Positions 12,275 through 60,309 of a stretch of DNA of 64,000 bases are shown piece by piece. The position numbers and the translations under genes were made by a program. Under the pieces are notes generated by a model, which worked only from the letters and a program-made list of their open reading frames with translations, searched no databases and was not told the origin of the DNA. The DNA lies in IMG/VR virus record IMGVR_UViG_3300042367_000228, positions 308,017-372,016 of that record; one strand, written 5' to 3'. Each line of letters begins with the position of its first letter. The stretch's first letter is position 1.

Positions 12275-12293
12275 TAGGCCCCGCTGTACATAT

Positions 12294-14575: not shown

Positions 14576-15050
14576 ATAACTACAGCAGGTGTCGCGCAAA
14601 CTGTATTATCTATGCGCCCTATAACTGGACAGATGTATCACAGTGATGGAATTGTTGAACTGTAGCAACGACATAACCACCTACCCATTTGGATGAACAT
14701 GAGATGTACCTTTACAAAACTCATTACAGGTTATGGCCCCGCTGTACACGTAAGGTTAAAAGAAGGAGTAGCACTCCTACGACTGATTATATGGTTAGCA
14801 TTGTATAATCAGTCCGCCGTCATATATCACCAGGACGGAGCTCGAGGTACCGGATGACCGCCTCTGTAATGCTCTAATGCTAAGACAAAAAACGAACTCG
14901 ACAAATGTCTTTTTTGCCACATGGCCTAGTTGGGCCATTGTGACTATTTGAATCTGACAAAATGAAATAAAAGAAAAATAAAATTATAATAATTGATATG
15001 AGTGCCAACGAATATAAAATTATTATAATTTAGGACTATAGTCCTTTATA
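14576..15050 (+). ncRNA. candidate large structured ncRNA or leader
   Basis: ~480 nt without a convincing ORF, at least 5 stems incl. 11-bp (14781-14814) and 14-bp (14981-15031). Confidence 0.45.
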
Positions 15051-32051: not shown

Positions 32052-32117
32052 ACTTCTTTACAACCCAACGACACTTTGCTATAATATGTTTTTACTTAAA
32101 CACACGCGGAGCGCACT

Positions 32118-33102: not shown

Positions 33103-33168
33103 ACTTCTTTACACACCCCGCTGTAAATGCTATAATATGTTTTTACTTAATAAAGTTTGGAGCGCACA

Positions 33169-33828: not shown

Positions 33829-33903
33829 GATTTAAAAATCACTTGCAATCCAGCAAGCACTTTACTATAATATGTTTTTAGTTACTACAACGCGGAGCGC
33901 ACT

Positions 33904-34458: not shown

Positions 34459-34938
34459 TTGCATACCAGCGCATAGTTTGTTATACTATGCGCTTACTAA
34501 CAAGCAATGCGGAGCGCACTATGCCATATAATACTGTTACTAATCATTTACTTCGTTTAGCTGACTACGTTGAAGCTAAGTTAGTTACTGAATATGAAAG
34601 ACCCAACGGCACAACTACTTACTTCCCAGCTACTGGTTTTGTAATGATAGTTAAAACAGGCAATTACTATGGAATGGATATAGGACGTGTACAAAGCGTT
34701 GACATAGACGTAGACGGTACTGCATCTTGTATCACTATTGATGGCTACTTTCGTAGCTTAGAGGACGATCCGGTTGATGAAGACACATGGGGACTTCATA
34801 TTAAAATGATCACAGCTTCTGAATGGCACAAGGAAGAACGTAGAGAGTTAGTACACGGTTAACAAACCATTTGCATACCAGCGCATAGTTTGTTATACTA
34901 TGCGCTTACTAACAAGCAATGCGGAGCGCACTATGCCA
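34459..34938 (+). repeat. 68-bp identical promoter-leader repeat
   Basis: 34459-34526 = 34871-34938; 57 bp also at 35658-35714. Confidence 0.9.
34521..34862 (+). CDS. hypothetical protein
   Basis: promoter cassette; start after GGAGCG. Confidence 0.65.
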   Translation: MPYNTVTNHLLRLADYVEAKLVTEYERPNGTTTYFPATGFVMIVKTGNYYGMDIGRVQSVDIDVDGTASCITIDGYFRSLEDDPVDEDTWGLHIKMITASEWHKEERRELVHG

Positions 34939-35223: not shown

Positions 35224-35296
35224 TTAAAAACCATTTGCAATTCCAAACTTAGTTTGCTATAATATGTTTTTACTTACACAACACGCGGAGCGCACA

Positions 35297-36427: not shown

Positions 36428-36510
36428 TTATGTTGGTTTAAACAGTTCTTTACAAGTCAGTTTTAATTTGCTATAATATGTTTTTACTTACACAAACTGT
36501 GGAGCGTAAT

Positions 36511-37549: not shown

Positions 37550-37595
37550 AGTTTTAAAACTAAATAGATTACAAGATTGTAACAGAATATTTAAT

Positions 37596-37667
37596 CCGTT
37601 CTTAGCATAAAGGTAATGCCAGGTCCTCATAAGACCCACTATCTCAGTTCGACCCTGAGGGAACGGA
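37596..37667 (+). tRNA. tRNA-CAT (Met or Ile2)
   Basis: cloverleaf: CCGTTCT/GGAACGG, loop CT-CAT-AA, CTCAG-TTCGACC-CTGAG; no encoded CCA. Confidence 0.85.
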
Positions 37668-37707
37668 TTAAATGTTTTGTAATAATACAGTTAACAACCA
37701 TTTTTAT

Positions 37708-37857
37708 ACTTGAGTAACTCAGTTGGCCAGAGTTGGGGCTATTTGCATGCCCCCAGTAACAGTTGTGCCGTTAACACTATAATCGCGATATAGTTAGGAA
37801 CAATCAAACTGCCCTGCATGCCCGGGGAGACGCGCGGTTCGAATCCCGCCTCAAGTA
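37708..37857 (+). ncRNA. tRNA-like RNA with ~71-nt insertion in anticodon arm
   Basis: ACTTGAG/CTCAAGT acceptor, canonical D arm, GGTTCGAATCC T loop; TGCATGCCC direct repeat at 37744 and 37815. Confidence 0.6.
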
Positions 37858-37867
37858 CCTTCTTTAT

Positions 37868-37942
37868 GGAACTATAGTATAACAGTAGTATGCAGGTCTG
37901 CAAAACCTTGCGGTGCCGATGCAAATTTGGCTAGTTCCTCCA
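37868..37942 (+). tRNA. tRNA-Cys(GCA)
   Basis: GGAACTA/TAGTTCC, CT-GCA-AA loop, U discriminator, CCA; atypical TGCAAAT T loop. Confidence 0.85.
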
Positions 37943-37955
37943 AAATTTAAGCATA

Positions 37956-38675
37956 TTAGGGTTTGCGTTTACAGTTATCAAAATGGTATCGTTTCATATT
38001 TCCACCTCTTCCTATTTTATTACAGTAAGGGCAGGTTAATTCAATTTTTTGTTTTCCCTTCATTGCGGCACTTATGTTAGCTTTATGATTAGCTGATTTA
38101 AGTATACCAGTTTTAGCAGAACTTATGTTAGATTTATGATTATCTGAAAGTTGTTTACCATTATGCGCAGACCGCATCTTAGATTTAGTTTCCTCTGAAT
38201 GTCTTTTTCCTGTATTAGTAACACTTAATTTAGCTCGTGTTTTGGATGAAACAACTCTTCCTGTATTTGTAGAACTTAGCTTAGTCCGCATACTATCTGG
38301 CATACTTTTACCTTTGTTAGGCGACGGCCTTCCTGTAAGAGATGCACTTATTTTAGCCTTATGTTCATCTGATATAGTTTTTCCTTTATTAGCAATACTG
38401 GCTGCTATAGAAAACTTTCGTCTAAGCCATCCATACAATTTATTTGTAATTCTACAATTACCCATCATATTAGCCGCATACACTAATTTATGATTATGTG
38501 GGTAGATTTTTACAAGTAGCTGATGTGCTACATAATGAGCCTCGGGAGTTAATAATACTAAGTTACTTGGATTGTTAGAACCGCCCATACAACGAGGAAT
38601 TATGTGATGCTTTTCTGTATAGTCTGCAATCATATCTTTTGCAGTTAATTGTTCATATATCTTTTGATAGTTCAT
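37956..38675 (-). CDS. HNH homing endonuclease with NUMOD3 repeats
   Basis: N-terminal ~60 aa nearly identical to 25375-26160; S.E.K.K.S repeats; CPYC..HFDNC. Confidence 0.9.
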   Translation of the reverse strand: MNYQKIYEQLTAKDMIADYTEKHHIIPRCMGGSNNPSNLVLLTPEAHYVAHQLLVKIYPHNHKLVYAANMMGNCRITNKLYGWLRRKFSIAASIANKGKTISDEHKAKISASLTGRPSPNKGKSMPDSMRTKLSSTNTGRVVSSKTRAKLSVTNTGKRHSEETKSKMRSAHNGKQLSDNHKSNISSAKTGILKSANHKANISAAMKGKQKIELTCPYCNKIGRGGNMKRYHFDNCKRKP

Positions 38676-38725
38676 TGTACTTCTCCATTTATAAAAGAAG
38701 AGGTGAAAGTGTTGAATAAATACAT
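38672..38725 (-). CDS. 17-aa leader peptide coupled to HNH gene
   Basis: MYLFNTFTSSFINGEVQ*; same length and overlap as 26157-26210. Confidence 0.55.
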   Translation of the reverse strand: MYLFNTFTSSFINGEVQ

Positions 38726-38795
38726 TGCTGGTACTCCTATATAGTATTAGAGCCGTTAGATATTCCAGTATCGTGAACGGCTTTTTTATTTATCA
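38726..38795 (-). ncRNA. conserved structured leader of HNH cassette, copy 2
   Basis: GATA/TATC compensates GATC/GATC of copy 1; CTGG loop conserved. Confidence 0.6.
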
Positions 38796-39028
38796 AAAAT
38801 CAAATCAGGTTCCAACAACTGTTGCTAAATTACGCAACAAACAACAAAAAAACTCCAAAAAAAAGCATAGGATACCTGCGTTTTAACGCGGGTATTTTTG
38901 TGTTTAATGCTACACTATACACAACACAACACGCGCTAAATACGCAACGAAAAGAGCGTATTAACTCTTTACAATCCAACACAACTTTGTTATAATATAT
39001 TTTTACTTACAACACAGGAGCAAGTAGC

Positions 39029-39244
39029 ATGGCCTTAAAAGAAACTAACAAAAACAAAACAAAACCTGCAGAGCCGGTATGTTGCGGACAAGGGTGTAAC
39101 AATCATGAGAACATGAAGCCTGGCATTAAACCAGTGTCAGTAGATAAAACGTGTAAACTAGATAACCAAATTGTATTTGGATTTATCTTAATTGTAGGCG
39201 GTGTATTCTTACTGCTCAACGCGTTTATATTCCCATTACTATAA
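39029..39244 (+). CDS. small membrane protein
   Basis: promoter cassette; C-terminal TM helix. Confidence 0.6.
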   Translation: MALKETNKNKTKPAEPVCCGQGCNNHENMKPGIKPVSVDKTCKLDNQIVFGFILIVGGVFLLLNAFIFPLL

Positions 39245-39254
39245 CGGAGACACT

Positions 39255-39839
39255 ATGAAACAAACTACATTGGCATTAGCTATTATAACAGCGTTGGCAT
39301 TAACGGCTTGTGGCGAGAGTGCTGAAGAAAAGCAAGCCAGGCTGATGAAAGAGCAACAAGCACAGATCCAACAGCTCCAGGCCCAACAAGTACAACAGGC
39401 CCAGATCCAACAGCAACAACAATTCCAACAACCCCAACAGTATGCACCGCAGCCTCAAGTTATTCAACAGCCTGCAGCTCCTGTTGTAGTACAAGCCCCA
39501 CATCAAGATAACACCTTAACTAACTTGGCTACAGGTGCGTTGATTGGGCACGCATTGTCAGGTGGGTTTAATGGCGGCAGTAATAGCGCACCGGCTGAAC
39601 GTATTGTAGAGCATAAGACAGTTATTGTAAATAACCATCCAGCCCCTGCAGCACCTACTACATCGTTTGCCCCACCCCCTTCTCCAGTAGTACAAGCTCC
39701 GGCTCCTGCGGCGCCAAGAGCAAGTGGAATGGATATGAACAAGCTATCGCAGTCCTCTAGTTATGCACCACGTCCAAGTACCCCTGCTCCTAGAACATCT
39801 AGCAGTATGAATATGAGTCGTTTATCAAGTAAACGATAA
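39255..39839 (+). CDS. Gln/Pro-rich lipoprotein
   Basis: signal peptide with LTAC lipobox; Gly-zipper-like LATGALIGHALSGG. Confidence 0.75.
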   Translation: MKQTTLALAIITALALTACGESAEEKQARLMKEQQAQIQQLQAQQVQQAQIQQQQQFQQPQQYAPQPQVIQQPAAPVVVQAPHQDNTLTNLATGALIGHALSGGFNGGSNSAPAERIVEHKTVIVNNHPAPAAPTTSFAPPPSPVVQAPAPAAPRASGMDMNKLSQSSSYAPRPSTPAPRTSSSMNMSRLSSKR

Positions 39840-39916
39840 CTGCCTATAGCTCAAATGGACAGAGCGTTCCCCTCCTAAGGGAAAGGCTATGGGTTCAAGT
39901 CCCGTTAGGCAGGCCA
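39840..39916 (+). tRNA. tRNA-Arg(CCT)
   Basis: CTGCCTA/TAGGCAG, CT-CCT-AA loop, GGTTCAAGTCC, CCA. Confidence 0.92.
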
Positions 39917-42358: not shown

Positions 42359-42549
42359 TGTAAAAACCATTTGCAAACCAGCGCATAGTTTGTTATACTA
42401 TGCGCTTACTAACAAACAATTAGGAGCACAATATGCAATCGTTACGCAACAAGTTATTTCCATCAGGCGACTACACATTAGGGTTTGCTATTGTGGATGC
42501 AATTTTAGTAGTATTAGTAATCACTTTAATAGTAATTTAGGAGCGCGTT

Positions 42550-45746: not shown

Positions 45747-45815
45747 TTACCACTTGCTTACCAGTGCATAGTATGTTATACTATGCACTTACTAACAACA
45801 ACTGCGGAGCGCACT

Positions 45816-52617: not shown

Positions 52618-52820
52618 CATTGCTTACTTATAGTAAGCAATGACTATAGTGATAATATAAACTCTTTACACACCATAACACACTATAGTATAATAACAAA
52701 CAGTAACAACAGTCCAAACTATAGTAGCAATACACGCTATACTATAGACTATAGTGATAAACGCTATAGTAAGAGTACAAGAGATCTCTCGTATAGCGTG
52801 ACTATAGTGAACTATAGTAA
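52618..52820. repeat. cluster of ACTATAGT palindromes with 10-bp inverted repeat
   Basis: ACTATAGT at 52643, 52682, 52718, 52748, 52801, 52811; CATTGCTTAC/GTAAGCAATG IR at 52618-52642. Confidence 0.7.
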
Positions 52821-53136
52821 TAAGACAAATAGGCCCCGCTGTACATATATAGAGATTGATGCTGTACGATGAGAGGCTTTGAATTTTCTTTTGAGATTTG
52901 GTAAACAATGAGAAGATTGATGGGAGGCCTATGGGATTTGTGGGGACAAATGGTAAACAATGTGAAAAATACGGTTTTGAGTGGGGTATTCATTGTAGCT
53001 ACCCCTGCCTCCACCCAGCCAATCAAAACTTCATTAAGTATATAGACAATGGTAAAATAGTGCCAAAATAGTGCTTTACTTTGCCAAAACAGTGTGTTAT
53101 ACTGTGCGCATACTTTAATTTAATAGGAGCGCAACA

Positions 53137-53325
53137 ATGTTCATGTTCATATTCTCCACCGCTGTTACTATAGTAGTAATTGGTATAGTAGTTTGGCTCG
53201 GTTGGTTAGTACTCAGTGTGGGATTAATCTGCGGAGGAATATTTGCCTGGGAAGACACGCAGAATATAGCGTGGTTAGGACTATCGGCATTAGGATTGTG
53301 CTTTGCAAGCGCGGGATTGCGGTAA
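53137..53325 (+). CDS. small membrane protein
   Basis: promoter and AGGAGCG RBS; hydrophobic. Confidence 0.6.
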   Translation: MFMFIFSTAVTIVVIGIVVWLGWLVLSVGLICGGIFAWEDTQNIAWLGLSALGLCFASAGLR

Positions 53326-53393
53326 ACAAACCATTTGACAGTCATACTATACTATAGTATAATATGCACTTACTATAAAACAACGGAGCAACT

Positions 53394-54266
53394 ATGTCTA
53401 CAGCAACACTACAACCGCGTATTATATCAACAGACATGCCGCGTGCTACTATAGCGCAAAGAGCAGTAGAACCTGCAGTACACGAAACAGATGACCAGAT
53501 CGTAGATAGGTTACGCACTCGCTTTACTATACTAGAAGACATGACCAAAGCAGTAAAGAAAGGTGATGTACGAGCAATGATAGTAAGTGGACCACCTGGA
53601 GTTGGTAAGTCATTTGGTGTAGAAGCAGTGTTATCAAAGAACGACATGTTCGCTGCTATAGCGCAAGATCCGAGTCTAAAGAAGTATGAAATCGCAAAAG
53701 GCAATATATCAGCATTAGGACTATATCAATTACTATGGCAATACCGCGATAAGAAGTCTATAGTAGTGTTCGATGACTGTGATAGTGTACTGTTCGACGA
53801 TATCGCGTTAAACCTGTTAAAGGCTGCGTTAGATAGCGGTCGAAACAGATGGATCAGTTGGCACACAGAATCGCGAATACTGAAAGAAGCAGGTATTCCA
53901 AACACATTCAACTTTGAGGGCGGATGTATATTCATTACTAATGTTAAGTTCGATCATGTTCGTAGTAAGAAGTTAAAGGACCATTTGGAAGCTCTTGAGT
54001 CACGTTGCCACTACTTGGATCTTACTATAGACACAGATAGGGAAAAGATGTTGCGCATCAAGCAAATCATAAGCGACGGTATGCTTGACAAGTATGAGTT
54101 CGAGAACAACGAGCAGCAAGAGATCTTAGACTATATAGACACACATAAGCACAAGATGCGCGAACTAAGTTTGCGTATGGTACTCAAAGTCGCAGATTTG
54201 CGTAAGAGTATGCCAAACACATGGGAGTCAGTAGCTTCCGTGACGTGTATGCGACCAAAACGATAA
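53394..54266 (+). CDS. AAA+ family ATPase
   Basis: Walker A GPPGVGKS, Walker B IVVFDDCD, FITN, ALESRC arginine finger. Confidence 0.88.
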   Translation: MSTATLQPRIISTDMPRATIAQRAVEPAVHETDDQIVDRLRTRFTILEDMTKAVKKGDVRAMIVSGPPGVGKSFGVEAVLSKNDMFAAIAQDPSLKKYEIAKGNISALGLYQLLWQYRDKKSIVVFDDCDSVLFDDIALNLLKAALDSGRNRWISWHTESRILKEAGIPNTFNFEGGCIFITNVKFDHVRSKKLKDHLEALESRCHYLDLTIDTDREKMLRIKQIISDGMLDKYEFENNEQQEILDYIDTHKHKMRELSLRMVLKVADLRKSMPNTWESVASVTCMRPKR

Positions 54267-54283
54267 TTATCAGTTGCATACTA

Positions 54284-54410
54284 TAGTATAGTATGATTCG
54301 CTCCCATACTATACTAACCTCTTACTATAGTGTAAACTCGCTCCTTATACTATAGTTACTTCAAAGACTCAAAATGAATTCGCTCCTCGTTTTGGGTCTT
54401 TTTCTTTATA
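54284..54410 (+). ncRNA. three-hairpin RNA with A(U/C)UCGCUCC loops; last hairpin doubles as terminator
   Basis: 12-, 12- and 15-bp stems, 9-nt conserved loops, G-U pairs on + strand, U-tract. Confidence 0.75.
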
Positions 54411-54699
54411 TTAAAAACCGGACCCTGTACTCTGGTACTAGGTCGGTCTATAAATGCAAAAAACGGCAAAAACATGGGGCTACAGACCGCTAACGACGCG
54501 GGCCAAAAACCAAAGATGAGTCTTAATTATAGGTGCCTGGATACTAAAAAGGCCCCGCTGTACATATCGGACTATGCGCATTATATATGAATATAGTATA
54601 ACACATATACGCGTGGAAGTAAAGAGTTAATTAGTTCTTTACAAACCATTACTATAGTGTTATACTATACACATATTAACAACTAACGGGGTAAGCAGT

Positions 54700-54996
54700 A
54701 TGAAGCTATGTAATGTACCGCAGGACTTATTAGCAAAGCAAGTTATAATAGACACCATTCCAGACATTGCCTCTATAGTAGTAATATCTGGAGTATTAGT
54801 TGGATCGTATTATCTGTTTAGGTTATTAAAAGATGAGTTCAATGGATCGGATGTGTTTACCTATGTATGTGTAATGATTGTAGCATGGTTAGGTGGGATT
54901 GCGATGATCTCTCACTTGCTCACACATATAGTAACAGCATTCGCCAATCCAGAGTATGCCGCAATGGTTAAGTTTGCCGCAGAGTGCGCCAAATGA
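54700..54996 (+). CDS. membrane protein
   Basis: two TM helices; promoter cassette. Confidence 0.65.
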   Translation: MKLCNVPQDLLAKQVIIDTIPDIASIVVISGVLVGSYYLFRLLKDEFNGSDVFTYVCVMIVAWLGGIAMISHLLTHIVTAFANPEYAAMVKFAAECAK

Positions 54997-55568
54997 TCCG
55001 CGCTGCCATTCTCGCTACTATAGTAGTAATGCCGGTGAATGCGGATGTATATAGATATACCGGACCGGATGGACGAGTTTGGTTAACTGATCATCCTCCG
55101 GTAGTTGTTAAACCAGAAGTCCAAACAGCTGCCAAACCAGTTCGCCAAGACCCTGCTACTATAGTAAAGACTGTGACTAAACCATTAACTCGATGGGAAG
55201 TCAATCATTATGTCCATAAAGCCGCAGTTAAGTATGGAGTAGATGAGAAGTTAGTACATGCAGTGATAAAGACTGAGAGTACATATAGGAAAGCGGCAGT
55301 GAGTAAGAAGGGCGCAGTTGGATTGATGCAGTTGATGCCAGCTACTGCTAGTAGGTTTGGAGTAAGTGATCGATTAGATGAAAAGCAGAATATAGATGGA
55401 GGGGTTAAGTTCCTTAAGTTCTTATTAGATACATTCAAAGACCCAAAGTTAGCGGTTGCGGGTTACAATGCGGGCGAGCATGCAGTGATGCGACATAAGA
55501 ATAAGATACCTCCATATCCCGAGACAGTGAATTATGTGGGATTGGTGATGGCGGCATACAACGAATAA
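54993..55568 (+). CDS. lytic transglycosylase (SLT) with DUF4124-like N-terminus
   Basis: signal peptide; YRYTGPDG; VIKTES, GA.GLMQLMP, AGYNAGE. Confidence 0.9.
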   Translation: MIRAAILATIVVMPVNADVYRYTGPDGRVWLTDHPPVVVKPEVQTAAKPVRQDPATIVKTVTKPLTRWEVNHYVHKAAVKYGVDEKLVHAVIKTESTYRKAAVSKKGAVGLMQLMPATASRFGVSDRLDEKQNIDGGVKFLKFLLDTFKDPKLAVAGYNAGEHAVMRHKNKIPPYPETVNYVGLVMAAYNE

Positions 55569-56025
55569 AAAGTTCTTTACAAACCATATAGCATTTGCTA
55601 TACTATATACACTTTAATATATACGGAGTTACACAAAATGTCGTTTTTATATAGTTTCACAGTGTTTACTACTATAGTATTGTTAAGCGCAATCGCATTG
55701 TTGAACTGGTATGAGATTGTGATATAATTAGTTCTTTACAAACCAAAACTAGTTTGCTATACTATATACAAGTTAAACAACAATGCGGAGCGTGTTATGC
55801 AAGCTAAGATAAAACAATTAGTTGAAAAAGCAAACAAGTATGCCATTTGGGAAAACGTGGAAACGGCGTACTATGCTAGTCCGGAGATAGTTGGCTACAA
55901 TGCAAAGGGCAAACGGGTTCTGAGAAGAGTTGAAAGATTATTGAAAGCGGTTTAAAAACTTCTTTACAAACCAAAATTGTTTTGCTATACTATATGCAAG
56001 TTAAACAACAATGCGGAGCGTAAAA

Positions 56026-56241: not shown

Positions 56242-56351
56242 ACAAAGTGCTTGCTAATTTGTTTTGTTGCTGTATAATATGCAACAAGTTAGCAAGCAAG
56301 CTAATTTAACTAAGCAGTACAATTTAACTTTACTATTTCGGAGCGTACAAC

Positions 56352-58173: not shown

Positions 58174-58272
58174 AAACTGCTTGCTAACTTGTACATAGTT
58201 TGCTATAATATGTGCAAGTTAGCAATGTTGCTAACTGTTACAAAACTTTATATAACTTTCGGAGCGTATCGT

Positions 58273-58677: not shown

Positions 58678-58942
58678 GCCCCGCTGTACATATACACACG
58701 CGCAGGCTACACGGTAAACAAAGTGCTTGCAATGCGCGTGTGTATAGCGTATAATATGTTTTTACATTAAAGCAAAACGGAGCGCAAATGCAATACAATA
58801 ACACTTACCCACAACGCCCATATTGCACTACGTGCGGGGACTTAGAGGTACTATACAACATGGAAACAGATGAGCTTGAACCATGTTGGGATTGTGAGCA
58901 AACTGAATCAAATGACTTTAACGATAAAGCGGAGCGTGTATA

Positions 58943-60248: not shown

Positions 60249-60309
60249 AGTAACACGAAGCACACGGACGTGCAAACAAACTAACTTAATGATAATTTGG
60301 AGCGTAAAG

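Follow-up and report, generated by a model that had tools for sequence, protein, structure and literature searches.

Three consecutive hairpins lie directly downstream of an AAA+ ATPase gene in an uncultivated giant phage, and their loops share a core that is the exact complement of the ribosome-binding site (RBS) of a block of the phage's small genes. The hairpins recur in 112 of 163 viral and metagenome loci with a homologous AAA+ gene, and the complementary RBS, GGAGCG, is common in the hairpin-bearing loci and rare in loci without them. On present evidence, which is comparative only, we consider it about as likely as not that this is an undescribed 3'UTR RNA that controls translation of that gene class. 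A first-pass annotation made from the sequence alone had described the triple hairpin and its match to the RBS, and this observation is confirmed. Its reading, that one phage small RNA silences a whole early regulon in the manner of Staphylococcus aureus RNAIII, is only partly supported.

Three hairpins follow an AAA+ gene

The window analyzed here comprises the last 64 kb (64,000 nt) of a 372-kb IMG/VR contig, IMGVR_UViG_3300042367_000228, and an identical stretch lies on a second contig. The genome is AT-rich (about 38% GC), is packed with small + strand ORFs, and has no nucleotide-level relative among deposited phages. The ORF at 53394-54266 (+) encodes a 290-aa AAA+ protein of phrog_1250, the family of T4 NrdC.10, which has no known function. 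The best cultured match, in the Pseudomonas jumbo phage PA5oct, is 48% identical, and searches of the PDB and NCBIfam returned no assignment for the protein. A scan of ten neighboring ORFs against PHROG found only unknowns and one homing endonuclease. The AAA+ gene is preceded by a consensus sigma70-type promoter (TTGACA, 17 nt, TATAAT) at 53335-53363 (+), a 12/12 match in a promoter scan, which by inference also drives the hairpins. Its RBS at 53385-53390 (+) is GGAGCA, with one mismatch to the loop complement.

The first hairpin starts 18 nt after the AAA+ stop codon. Hairpin 1 (54284-54316, +) has a 12-bp stem (54284-54295/54305-54316) and the 9-nt loop ATTCGCTCC at 54296-54304. Hairpin 2 (54324-54356, +) has a 12-bp stem with one G.U pair (54324-54335/54345-54356) and the loop ACTCGCTCC at 54336-54344. 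Hairpin 3 (54363-54401, +) has a 15-bp stem with two U.G pairs (54363-54377/54387-54401), the loop ATTCGCTCC at 54378-54386, and a T-tract (TTTTTCTTTAT) at and after its 3' arm (54397-54410, +). It therefore has the features of an intrinsic terminator, a stable hairpin immediately followed by a U-run, although the terminator scan, whose loop limit is 8 nt, did not list it. The + strand fold is -40.8 kcal/mol (z -7.7, 0 of 200 shuffles as good), whereas the - strand fold is -36.8 kcal/mol (z -4.2). The loop word AYTCGCTCC occurs 3 times in the 64 kb against 0.40 expected, only at these sites. A covariance model of the hairpin unit found only these three in the window (38.9, 39.3, and 38.1 bits, respectively, E about 1e-9), with the next hit at 14.6 bits (E 0.27). 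The stems had been annotated as unrelated, but those of hairpins 1 and 2 are not really so, as both are built from the locally abundant TACTATAG/TATAGTA words.

GGAGCG is the RBS of 17 genes in the window

All 17 GGAGCG positions listed in the first-pass annotation are real, and each lies 5-9 nt upstream of an ATG that opens an ORF of at least 51 aa. Twelve of these candidate targets, all on the + strand, sit in a repeated promoter-leader cassette: 32108-32113, 33159-33164, 33894-33899, 34511-34516, 34923-34928, 35287-35292, 36501-36506, 45806-45811, 53126-53131 (the gene just upstream of the AAA+ gene), 55787-55792, 56015-56020, and 58779-58784. The other five are at 42540-42545, 56340-56345, 58261-58266, 58931-58936, and 60299-60304. 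GGAGCG occurs 25 times in the window against 8.4 expected, and 17 of the 19 + strand copies outside the hairpins are RBSs. It is the commonest GGAG-type RBS on the + strand (17 of 72), and its use is confined to 32-61 kb, with 0 of 42 GGAG-type RBSs before 32 kb (both strands) against 17 of 42 after. However, only 10 of 33 genes directly behind a sigma70-type promoter carry it, so that it marks a subset of genes rather than "the early regulon". In this phage the bases after GGAGCG are C or T, and the complementarity to the loop is only 6 nt.

The hairpins are a conserved family

Conservation of the loop among homologs had been proposed beforehand as a check on the annotation. In order to find relatives, we scanned viral contigs for the triple-loop pattern. 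The scans returned mostly coding tandem repeats, and only the window's own contig and three relatives (L074, L180, and L202) were true hits. The AAA+ proteins of the three relatives are 66-79% identical to that of the window, and each has the same layout after the AAA+ stop, with three hairpins in L180 and L202 and five in L074, with different stems and identical loops. Two further loci, L166 and L199, contain 57-nt repeats that each carry an ACTCGCTCC hairpin, but these show no covariation and no enrichment of GGAGCG RBSs and were set aside as probably unrelated. Across the 14 hairpins of the window and the three relatives, 88% of cells pair, all 12 pairs show changes on both sides, and the covariation score is 0.977 against 0.25 for shuffled alignments (0 of 500). 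Slid controls pair at 31-42%.

A search with an AAA+ alignment brought in 80 viral and 80 metagenome loci with 55-91% identity. A covariance model built on the AT-rich, continuous stems of the window's clade missed most GC-rich, bulged relatives, and the family census was therefore made by motif plus stem checks. Of 163 loci, 112 carry at least one UCGCUCC loop on the gene strand, with 1-5 hairpins each; a slightly different count gives one hairpin in 47 loci, two in 56, three in 6, and five in 1. Most lie 1-230 nt after the AAA+ stop, while one subclade has a single hairpin about 600-930 nt downstream. A run of at least five T follows the last hairpin in 83 of 110 loci. The loop core never varies, with 147 perfect copies within about 1 kb downstream of the AAA+ stop against about 11 one-mismatch hits that look like chance. 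In two counts, 62 of 77 loops and 106 of 116 loops read exactly AUUCGCUCC.

In most relatives the hairpin is more elaborate, with a covarying lower stem, a conserved 5' internal-loop UAA, an R-Y pair that switches between A-U (13) and G-C (11), a bulged pyrimidine, and CCG/CGG closing the loop. In the terminal hairpin of this wider family (26 sequences), 81% of cells pair against 65% when shuffled. Relatives without the motif have either a plain terminator or the next gene at that place, as do the cultured phages PA5oct and Cronobacter phage S13, which have no such hairpins. Rfam 15 contains no matching family in either search mode, the best scores being 11-18 bits against thresholds of 38-100, all at E of 1 or more. 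Literature searches for GGAGCG or anti-SD phage RNAs found nothing equivalent.

Loop and RBS occur in the same clades

In order to compare RBS use, the motif was searched on the gene strand only, since a search of both strands also picks up the RBS itself and is partly circular. GGAGCG makes up 405 of 736 GGAG-type RBSs (55%) in the 112 hairpin-bearing loci, against 10 of 192 (5%) in 34 loci in which at least 1 kb downstream of the AAA+ gene is visible and holds no hairpin. Per locus, the split is 91 of 97 against 2 of 26. The RBS consensus in relatives is A-GGAGCG-A (77%)-A (66%), which is complementary to the UUCGCUCC of the loop over 8 nt. An unbiased word count ranks AGGAGCGA and TCGCTCCC/TTCGCTCC just behind the -35 box among all 8-mers in these loci, whereas in loci without the motif GGAGCGA ranks about 1000th and TCGCTCC is absent. 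The AAA+ gene's own RBS is GGAGCG in 87 of about 100 hairpin-bearing loci, although not in the window.

This association is limited by phylogeny. Loop and RBS follow clades of the AAA+ tree, and only 2-3 phylogenetically independent contrasts agree, too few for significance. In addition, two hairpin-bearing relatives use mostly GGAGCA nearby, with GGAGCG at 0 of 15 GGAG-type RBSs in L214 and 1 of 9 in L074. A search for variant loops with matching variant RBSs found none, as the loop never varies, which leaves no compensatory change between the two to support pairing.

From established knowledge of the 3' end of 16S rRNA, the CG(AA) extension of this RBS cannot pair with the 16S anti-SD. Computed duplexes are -7.6 kcal/mol for the anti-SD on AAGGAGCGC, against -9.5 kcal/mol for the loop with GGAGCG and -12.4 kcal/mol for UUCGCUCC with GGAGCGAA. 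Something other than the ribosome therefore appears to select for the extension. Predicted duplex energies nonetheless separate GGAGCG from GGAGCA leaders by only about 1.7 kcal/mol, and cofolding of the RNA with leaders was uninformative, because kissing loops are pseudoknots that the method cannot represent.

Context places the element on the + strand

The first-pass annotation had assigned the RNA to the + strand in part from G-U pairs in the stems. This argument holds in the close clade (9 G.U against 3 A.C) but not across the family, where fold energies slightly favor the - strand (mean -15.7 against -14.8 kcal/mol), probably because its G-rich loops can form extra pairs. The strand assignment therefore rests on context. 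In all 112 loci the element is co-oriented with the AAA+ gene and follows it inside a one-directional gene array, and the T-run lies on its 3' side. It is thus at the least the 3'UTR of the AAA+ mRNA, and not a demonstrated stand-alone small RNA as had been proposed. The covarying stems argue against a double-stranded DNA site.

A possible role in occlusion of a phage-specific Shine-Dalgarno sequence

In the explanation we favor, at about even confidence, the AAA+ gene would be transcribed from its consensus sigma70 promoter into an mRNA that ends in a conserved 3'UTR module of 1-5 hairpins (three here), the last of which would also be the intrinsic terminator. Each hairpin would hold out the heptamer UCGCUCC in a 9-nt loop, where a U-turn-type UCG (YUNR) would stack CGCUCC ready for pairing with the clade-specific SD variant GGAGCG (GGAGCGAA in most relatives) in unstructured A/C-rich leaders. 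Pairing would cover the SD and compete with the 30S subunit, which can pair only with GGAG, and the expected result is lower translation, and possibly faster decay, of the genes that carry this RBS. The RNA may act as the intact 3'UTR or as a processed fragment, in trans on the many GGAGCG leaders and, in most relatives, also in cis on the AAA+ mRNA's own RBS. The structure, its covariation, the invariant loop, the synteny and orientation, the complementarity, and the shared distribution of loop and RBS are established by the analysis, whereas transcription, processing and accumulation of the RNA, termination at the last hairpin, the U-turn fold, pairing in vivo, action in trans or in cis, the timing, and the sign of the effect, which could be repression or protection from a nuclease, are inferred.

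The main alternative, which we consider unlikely but cannot exclude, is that the hairpins are an array of sites for a phage or host RNA-binding protein, perhaps the AAA+ protein made from the same mRNA, which recognizes the loop together with the closing helix and bulge for autoregulation, mRNA stabilization, titration of the protein, or control of termination, in which case the complementarity to the RBS is incidental. Eight or nine loop positions are invariant, and the CCG/CGG helix, bulged pyrimidine, and UAA internal loop conserved in most relatives are more than antisense pairing needs and are typical of protein-bound hairpins. The element is also strictly linked to one gene, and its copy number varies from 1 to 5, as in sponge or operator arrays. 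However, a decoy for an RBS-binding protein should copy the RBS and not its complement, a 7-nt loop would contain the complement of the commonest RBS hexamer by chance only about 5e-4 of the time, and the match extends to 8 nt in the family. Loop and RBS also share the same clade distribution, the window's own clade lacks the bulge and the CCG/CGG helix yet keeps the loop, and no RNA-binding domain was found in the AAA+ protein. Less likely still is an element that acts only in cis, as an icaR-type autoregulator, with the loops folding back on the RBS of the same AAA+ mRNA to limit synthesis of the AAA+ protein, while the other GGAGCG genes are not regulated. The frequency of GGAGCG at the AAA+ gene in relatives is above the 55% background, in L074 it is the only GGAGCG RBS among nine, and the element is always on that mRNA, so that autoregulation remains a live alternative to a trans switch. 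Against this, three loops are maintained in the window although the AAA+ RBS there is GGAGCA, one loop would be enough for cis control where 1-5 are kept, and it does not explain why half of the neighboring genes share an unusual RBS extension that the 16S rRNA cannot read.

The remaining readings are improbable. The loops could pair with a conserved host RNA containing GGAGCG(AA), such as an rRNA or tRNA segment or host mRNAs, and interfere with host translation or ribosome assembly, with the similarity to the phage RBS being secondary. An unchanging partner would fit a loop that is invariant across phages whose AAA+ proteins have diverged to about 55-60% identity, but in an analysis without host sequence nothing supports this directly, and it does not explain the clade-specific GGAGCG RBS in the phages themselves. 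We regard as very doubtful that the functional RNA is the - strand, whose loops display GGAGCGAAU, as the CsrA/RsmA-type sponge that the first-pass annotation had offered as an alternative or as an SD mimic that decoys ribosomes. GGA-containing loops would form on this strand and a 10/12 sigma70-like site exists on it at 54336-54308, but it is disfavored by orientation, synteny, and the T-runs. The - strand would have no terminator, the + strand folds better in the window, only (A)NGGA and not GGAGCGAAU needs to be conserved for CsrA, and no CsrB/RsmY/RsmZ hit was found in Rfam. Equally doubtful is that these are ordinary tandem terminators or 3' stabilizing hairpins whose loop sequence has no function of its own. 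The last hairpin with its T-run looks like an intrinsic terminator, and relatives without the motif carry plain terminators at the same place, but terminator loops are not conserved, whereas here the stems change freely while the loop is invariant in 147 copies, and the upstream hairpins have no T-run.

More tentatively, and less likely than not, a large group of uncultivated big and giant phages may mark a class of its genes with a private SD extension, GGAGCG(AA), which the ribosome cannot read beyond GGAG, and encode in the 3'UTR of a conserved AAA+ gene a multi-loop RNA that reads this code. This would be an RNA-based, genome-wide translational switch in which one RNA acts on dozens of leaders, the RNA counterpart of T4 RegB. 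Known phage regulatory RNAs act on one or a few targets, and class-wide silencing of phage mRNAs through their SD is known only for a protein, RegB. If the pairing is real, it would show that phages can partition their own translation with an RBS code read by an RNA, would provide a simple, portable pair of repressor hairpin and orthogonal RBS for synthetic biology, directly testable with reporters in E. coli, and would add a new RNA family with clear covariation to a part of the virosphere that has no cultured members.

Comparison to known regulators

The resemblance to RNAIII is in mechanism only. As in hairpins 7, 13, and 14 of RNAIII, where one RNA acts on many RBSs, several hairpins present the same C-rich loop complementary to the SD of a set of mRNAs (PMC2837412), here with CGCUCC in three loops and 17 RBSs in the window that read GGAGCG. 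However, there was no hit to RNAIII (RF00503) at the gathering threshold over the window, nor at E up to 10 over 54200-54720. The element is a phage mRNA 3'UTR of about 120 nt and not a 514-nt quorum-sensing RNA that also encodes a peptide, and its loop is UCGCUCC, matching a private SD extension, in place of UCCC aimed at generic G-rich SDs. In the icaR mRNA of S. aureus, an anti-SD motif in the 3'UTR pairs with an SD, in cis or in trans, to block initiation (PMC3868564). The present motif likewise lies in a 3'UTR on the same strand, and in most relatives the AAA+ mRNA carries both the GGAGCG RBS and the complementary loops, while in the window the AAA+ RBS matches at 5 of 6 positions. It differs in having 1-5 copies displayed in hairpin loops, conserved across more than 100 phage genomes, and in that many other genes share the target RBS.

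The c4 antisense RNA of phages P1 and P7 is a phage-encoded structured RNA whose loop sequences pair with complementary sites around an RBS and block translation (PMC12197685). It targets one operon (icd/ant) next to its own gene in temperate phages and controls immunity, whereas here the target would be a multi-gene RBS class in large phages presumed to be lytic, and there was no hit to its Rfam family (RF01695). The RegB endoribonuclease is a functional analog in phages that carry the same AAA+ gene family, as in T4 a class of early mRNAs is switched off through its SD sequence, GGAG (PMC3014915). RegB is a protein nuclease that needs ribosomal protein S1 and prefers GGAG followed by purine-rich sequence, while here the proposed reader is an RNA and the signature is GGAGCG(AA). 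The CsrB/RsmY/RsmZ sponge RNAs are also arrays of hairpins with a repeated short loop motif and variable copy number, but their loops carry GGA on the transcribed strand and bind a protein, and here GGA would appear only on the strand that is not supported.

The loops also contain the YUNR tetranucleotide of antisense RNA recognition loops, 5' of the pairing bases, which in such RNAs forms a U-turn that presents the following bases for fast RNA-RNA pairing (PMC4485353). The loops AUUCGCUCC and ACUCGCUCC read A-UUCG-CUCC and A-CUCG-CUCC, and the bases that would be presented are exactly CGCUCC. The L074 loops read A-AUCG, keeping UNR only.

Additional possible regulatory and non-coding elements

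The word (A/T)AGGCCCCGCTGTACA(T/C)AT occurred 17 times in the window, at positions 12278, 13185, 13327, 13585, 14736, 17913, 20842, 23109, 30658, 32828, 52833, 54552, 56768, 58678, 61764, 62465, and 63859. All copies were on the + strand and all were intergenic, often 15-40 nt before an RBS. The word was also present in L180 and L202, two relatives with the same hairpin layout downstream of the AAA+ gene, and in the loci L287, L296, and L344. It may be a phage-specific (non-sigma70) promoter or another regulatory site. One copy lies 150 nt downstream of hairpin 3. The roughly 130-nt block between hairpin 3 and the GCCCCGCTGT word (54418-54550, + strand) is almost 100% identical in the window, L180, and L202, although their AAA+ proteins are only 78-79% identical. 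This block had no Rfam hit and contained no convincing ORF, and is an unexplained conserved non-coding element, possibly a second RNA.

Two other features were located next to copies of this word. A full-length match to the Polynucleobacter-1 RNA motif (RF01718, 59.6 bits against a threshold of 37) was identified at 14589-14733 on the + strand and is followed directly by a GCCCCGCTGT word at 14736. In addition, a short-period tandem repeat (agcaagcgcatagc...) is found at the very end of the contig (63859-64000, + strand), after the last GCCCCGCTGT word.

The sequence TACTATAG, with the core palindrome ACTATAGT, occurred 31 times against 3.7 expected on both strands of 52680-55680, clustered around the AAA+ locus. 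It forms part of the -10 regions (cTATAGTATAAT) and of the stems of hairpins 1 and 2, and may be an operator, or simply the local promoter dialect. In the leaders of genes in the wider family (loci L205-L364), GGTTGACA, an extended -35 box, was the most enriched 8-mer; these phages therefore rely heavily on host sigma70-type promoters around the AAA+ locus.

Tandem repeats with a hairpin were also found in two unrelated phage contigs, L166 (about 80-600, - strand) and L199 (11600-12000), which carry 8 or more tandem copies of a 57-nt repeat. Each repeat has a 7-bp hairpin with loop ACUCGCUCC, and one copy reads ACUACCUCC, but there was no GGAGCG RBS enrichment nearby, and any relation to the hairpin family is uncertain and the resemblance probably coincidental. 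Elsewhere in the window, a small tRNA cluster at 37595-39916 comprises tRNA-Met, a third tRNA found only by Rfam at 37868-37939, and tRNA-Arg(CCU), and is interrupted by a homing-endonuclease gene on the - strand (37956-38675, phrog_655).
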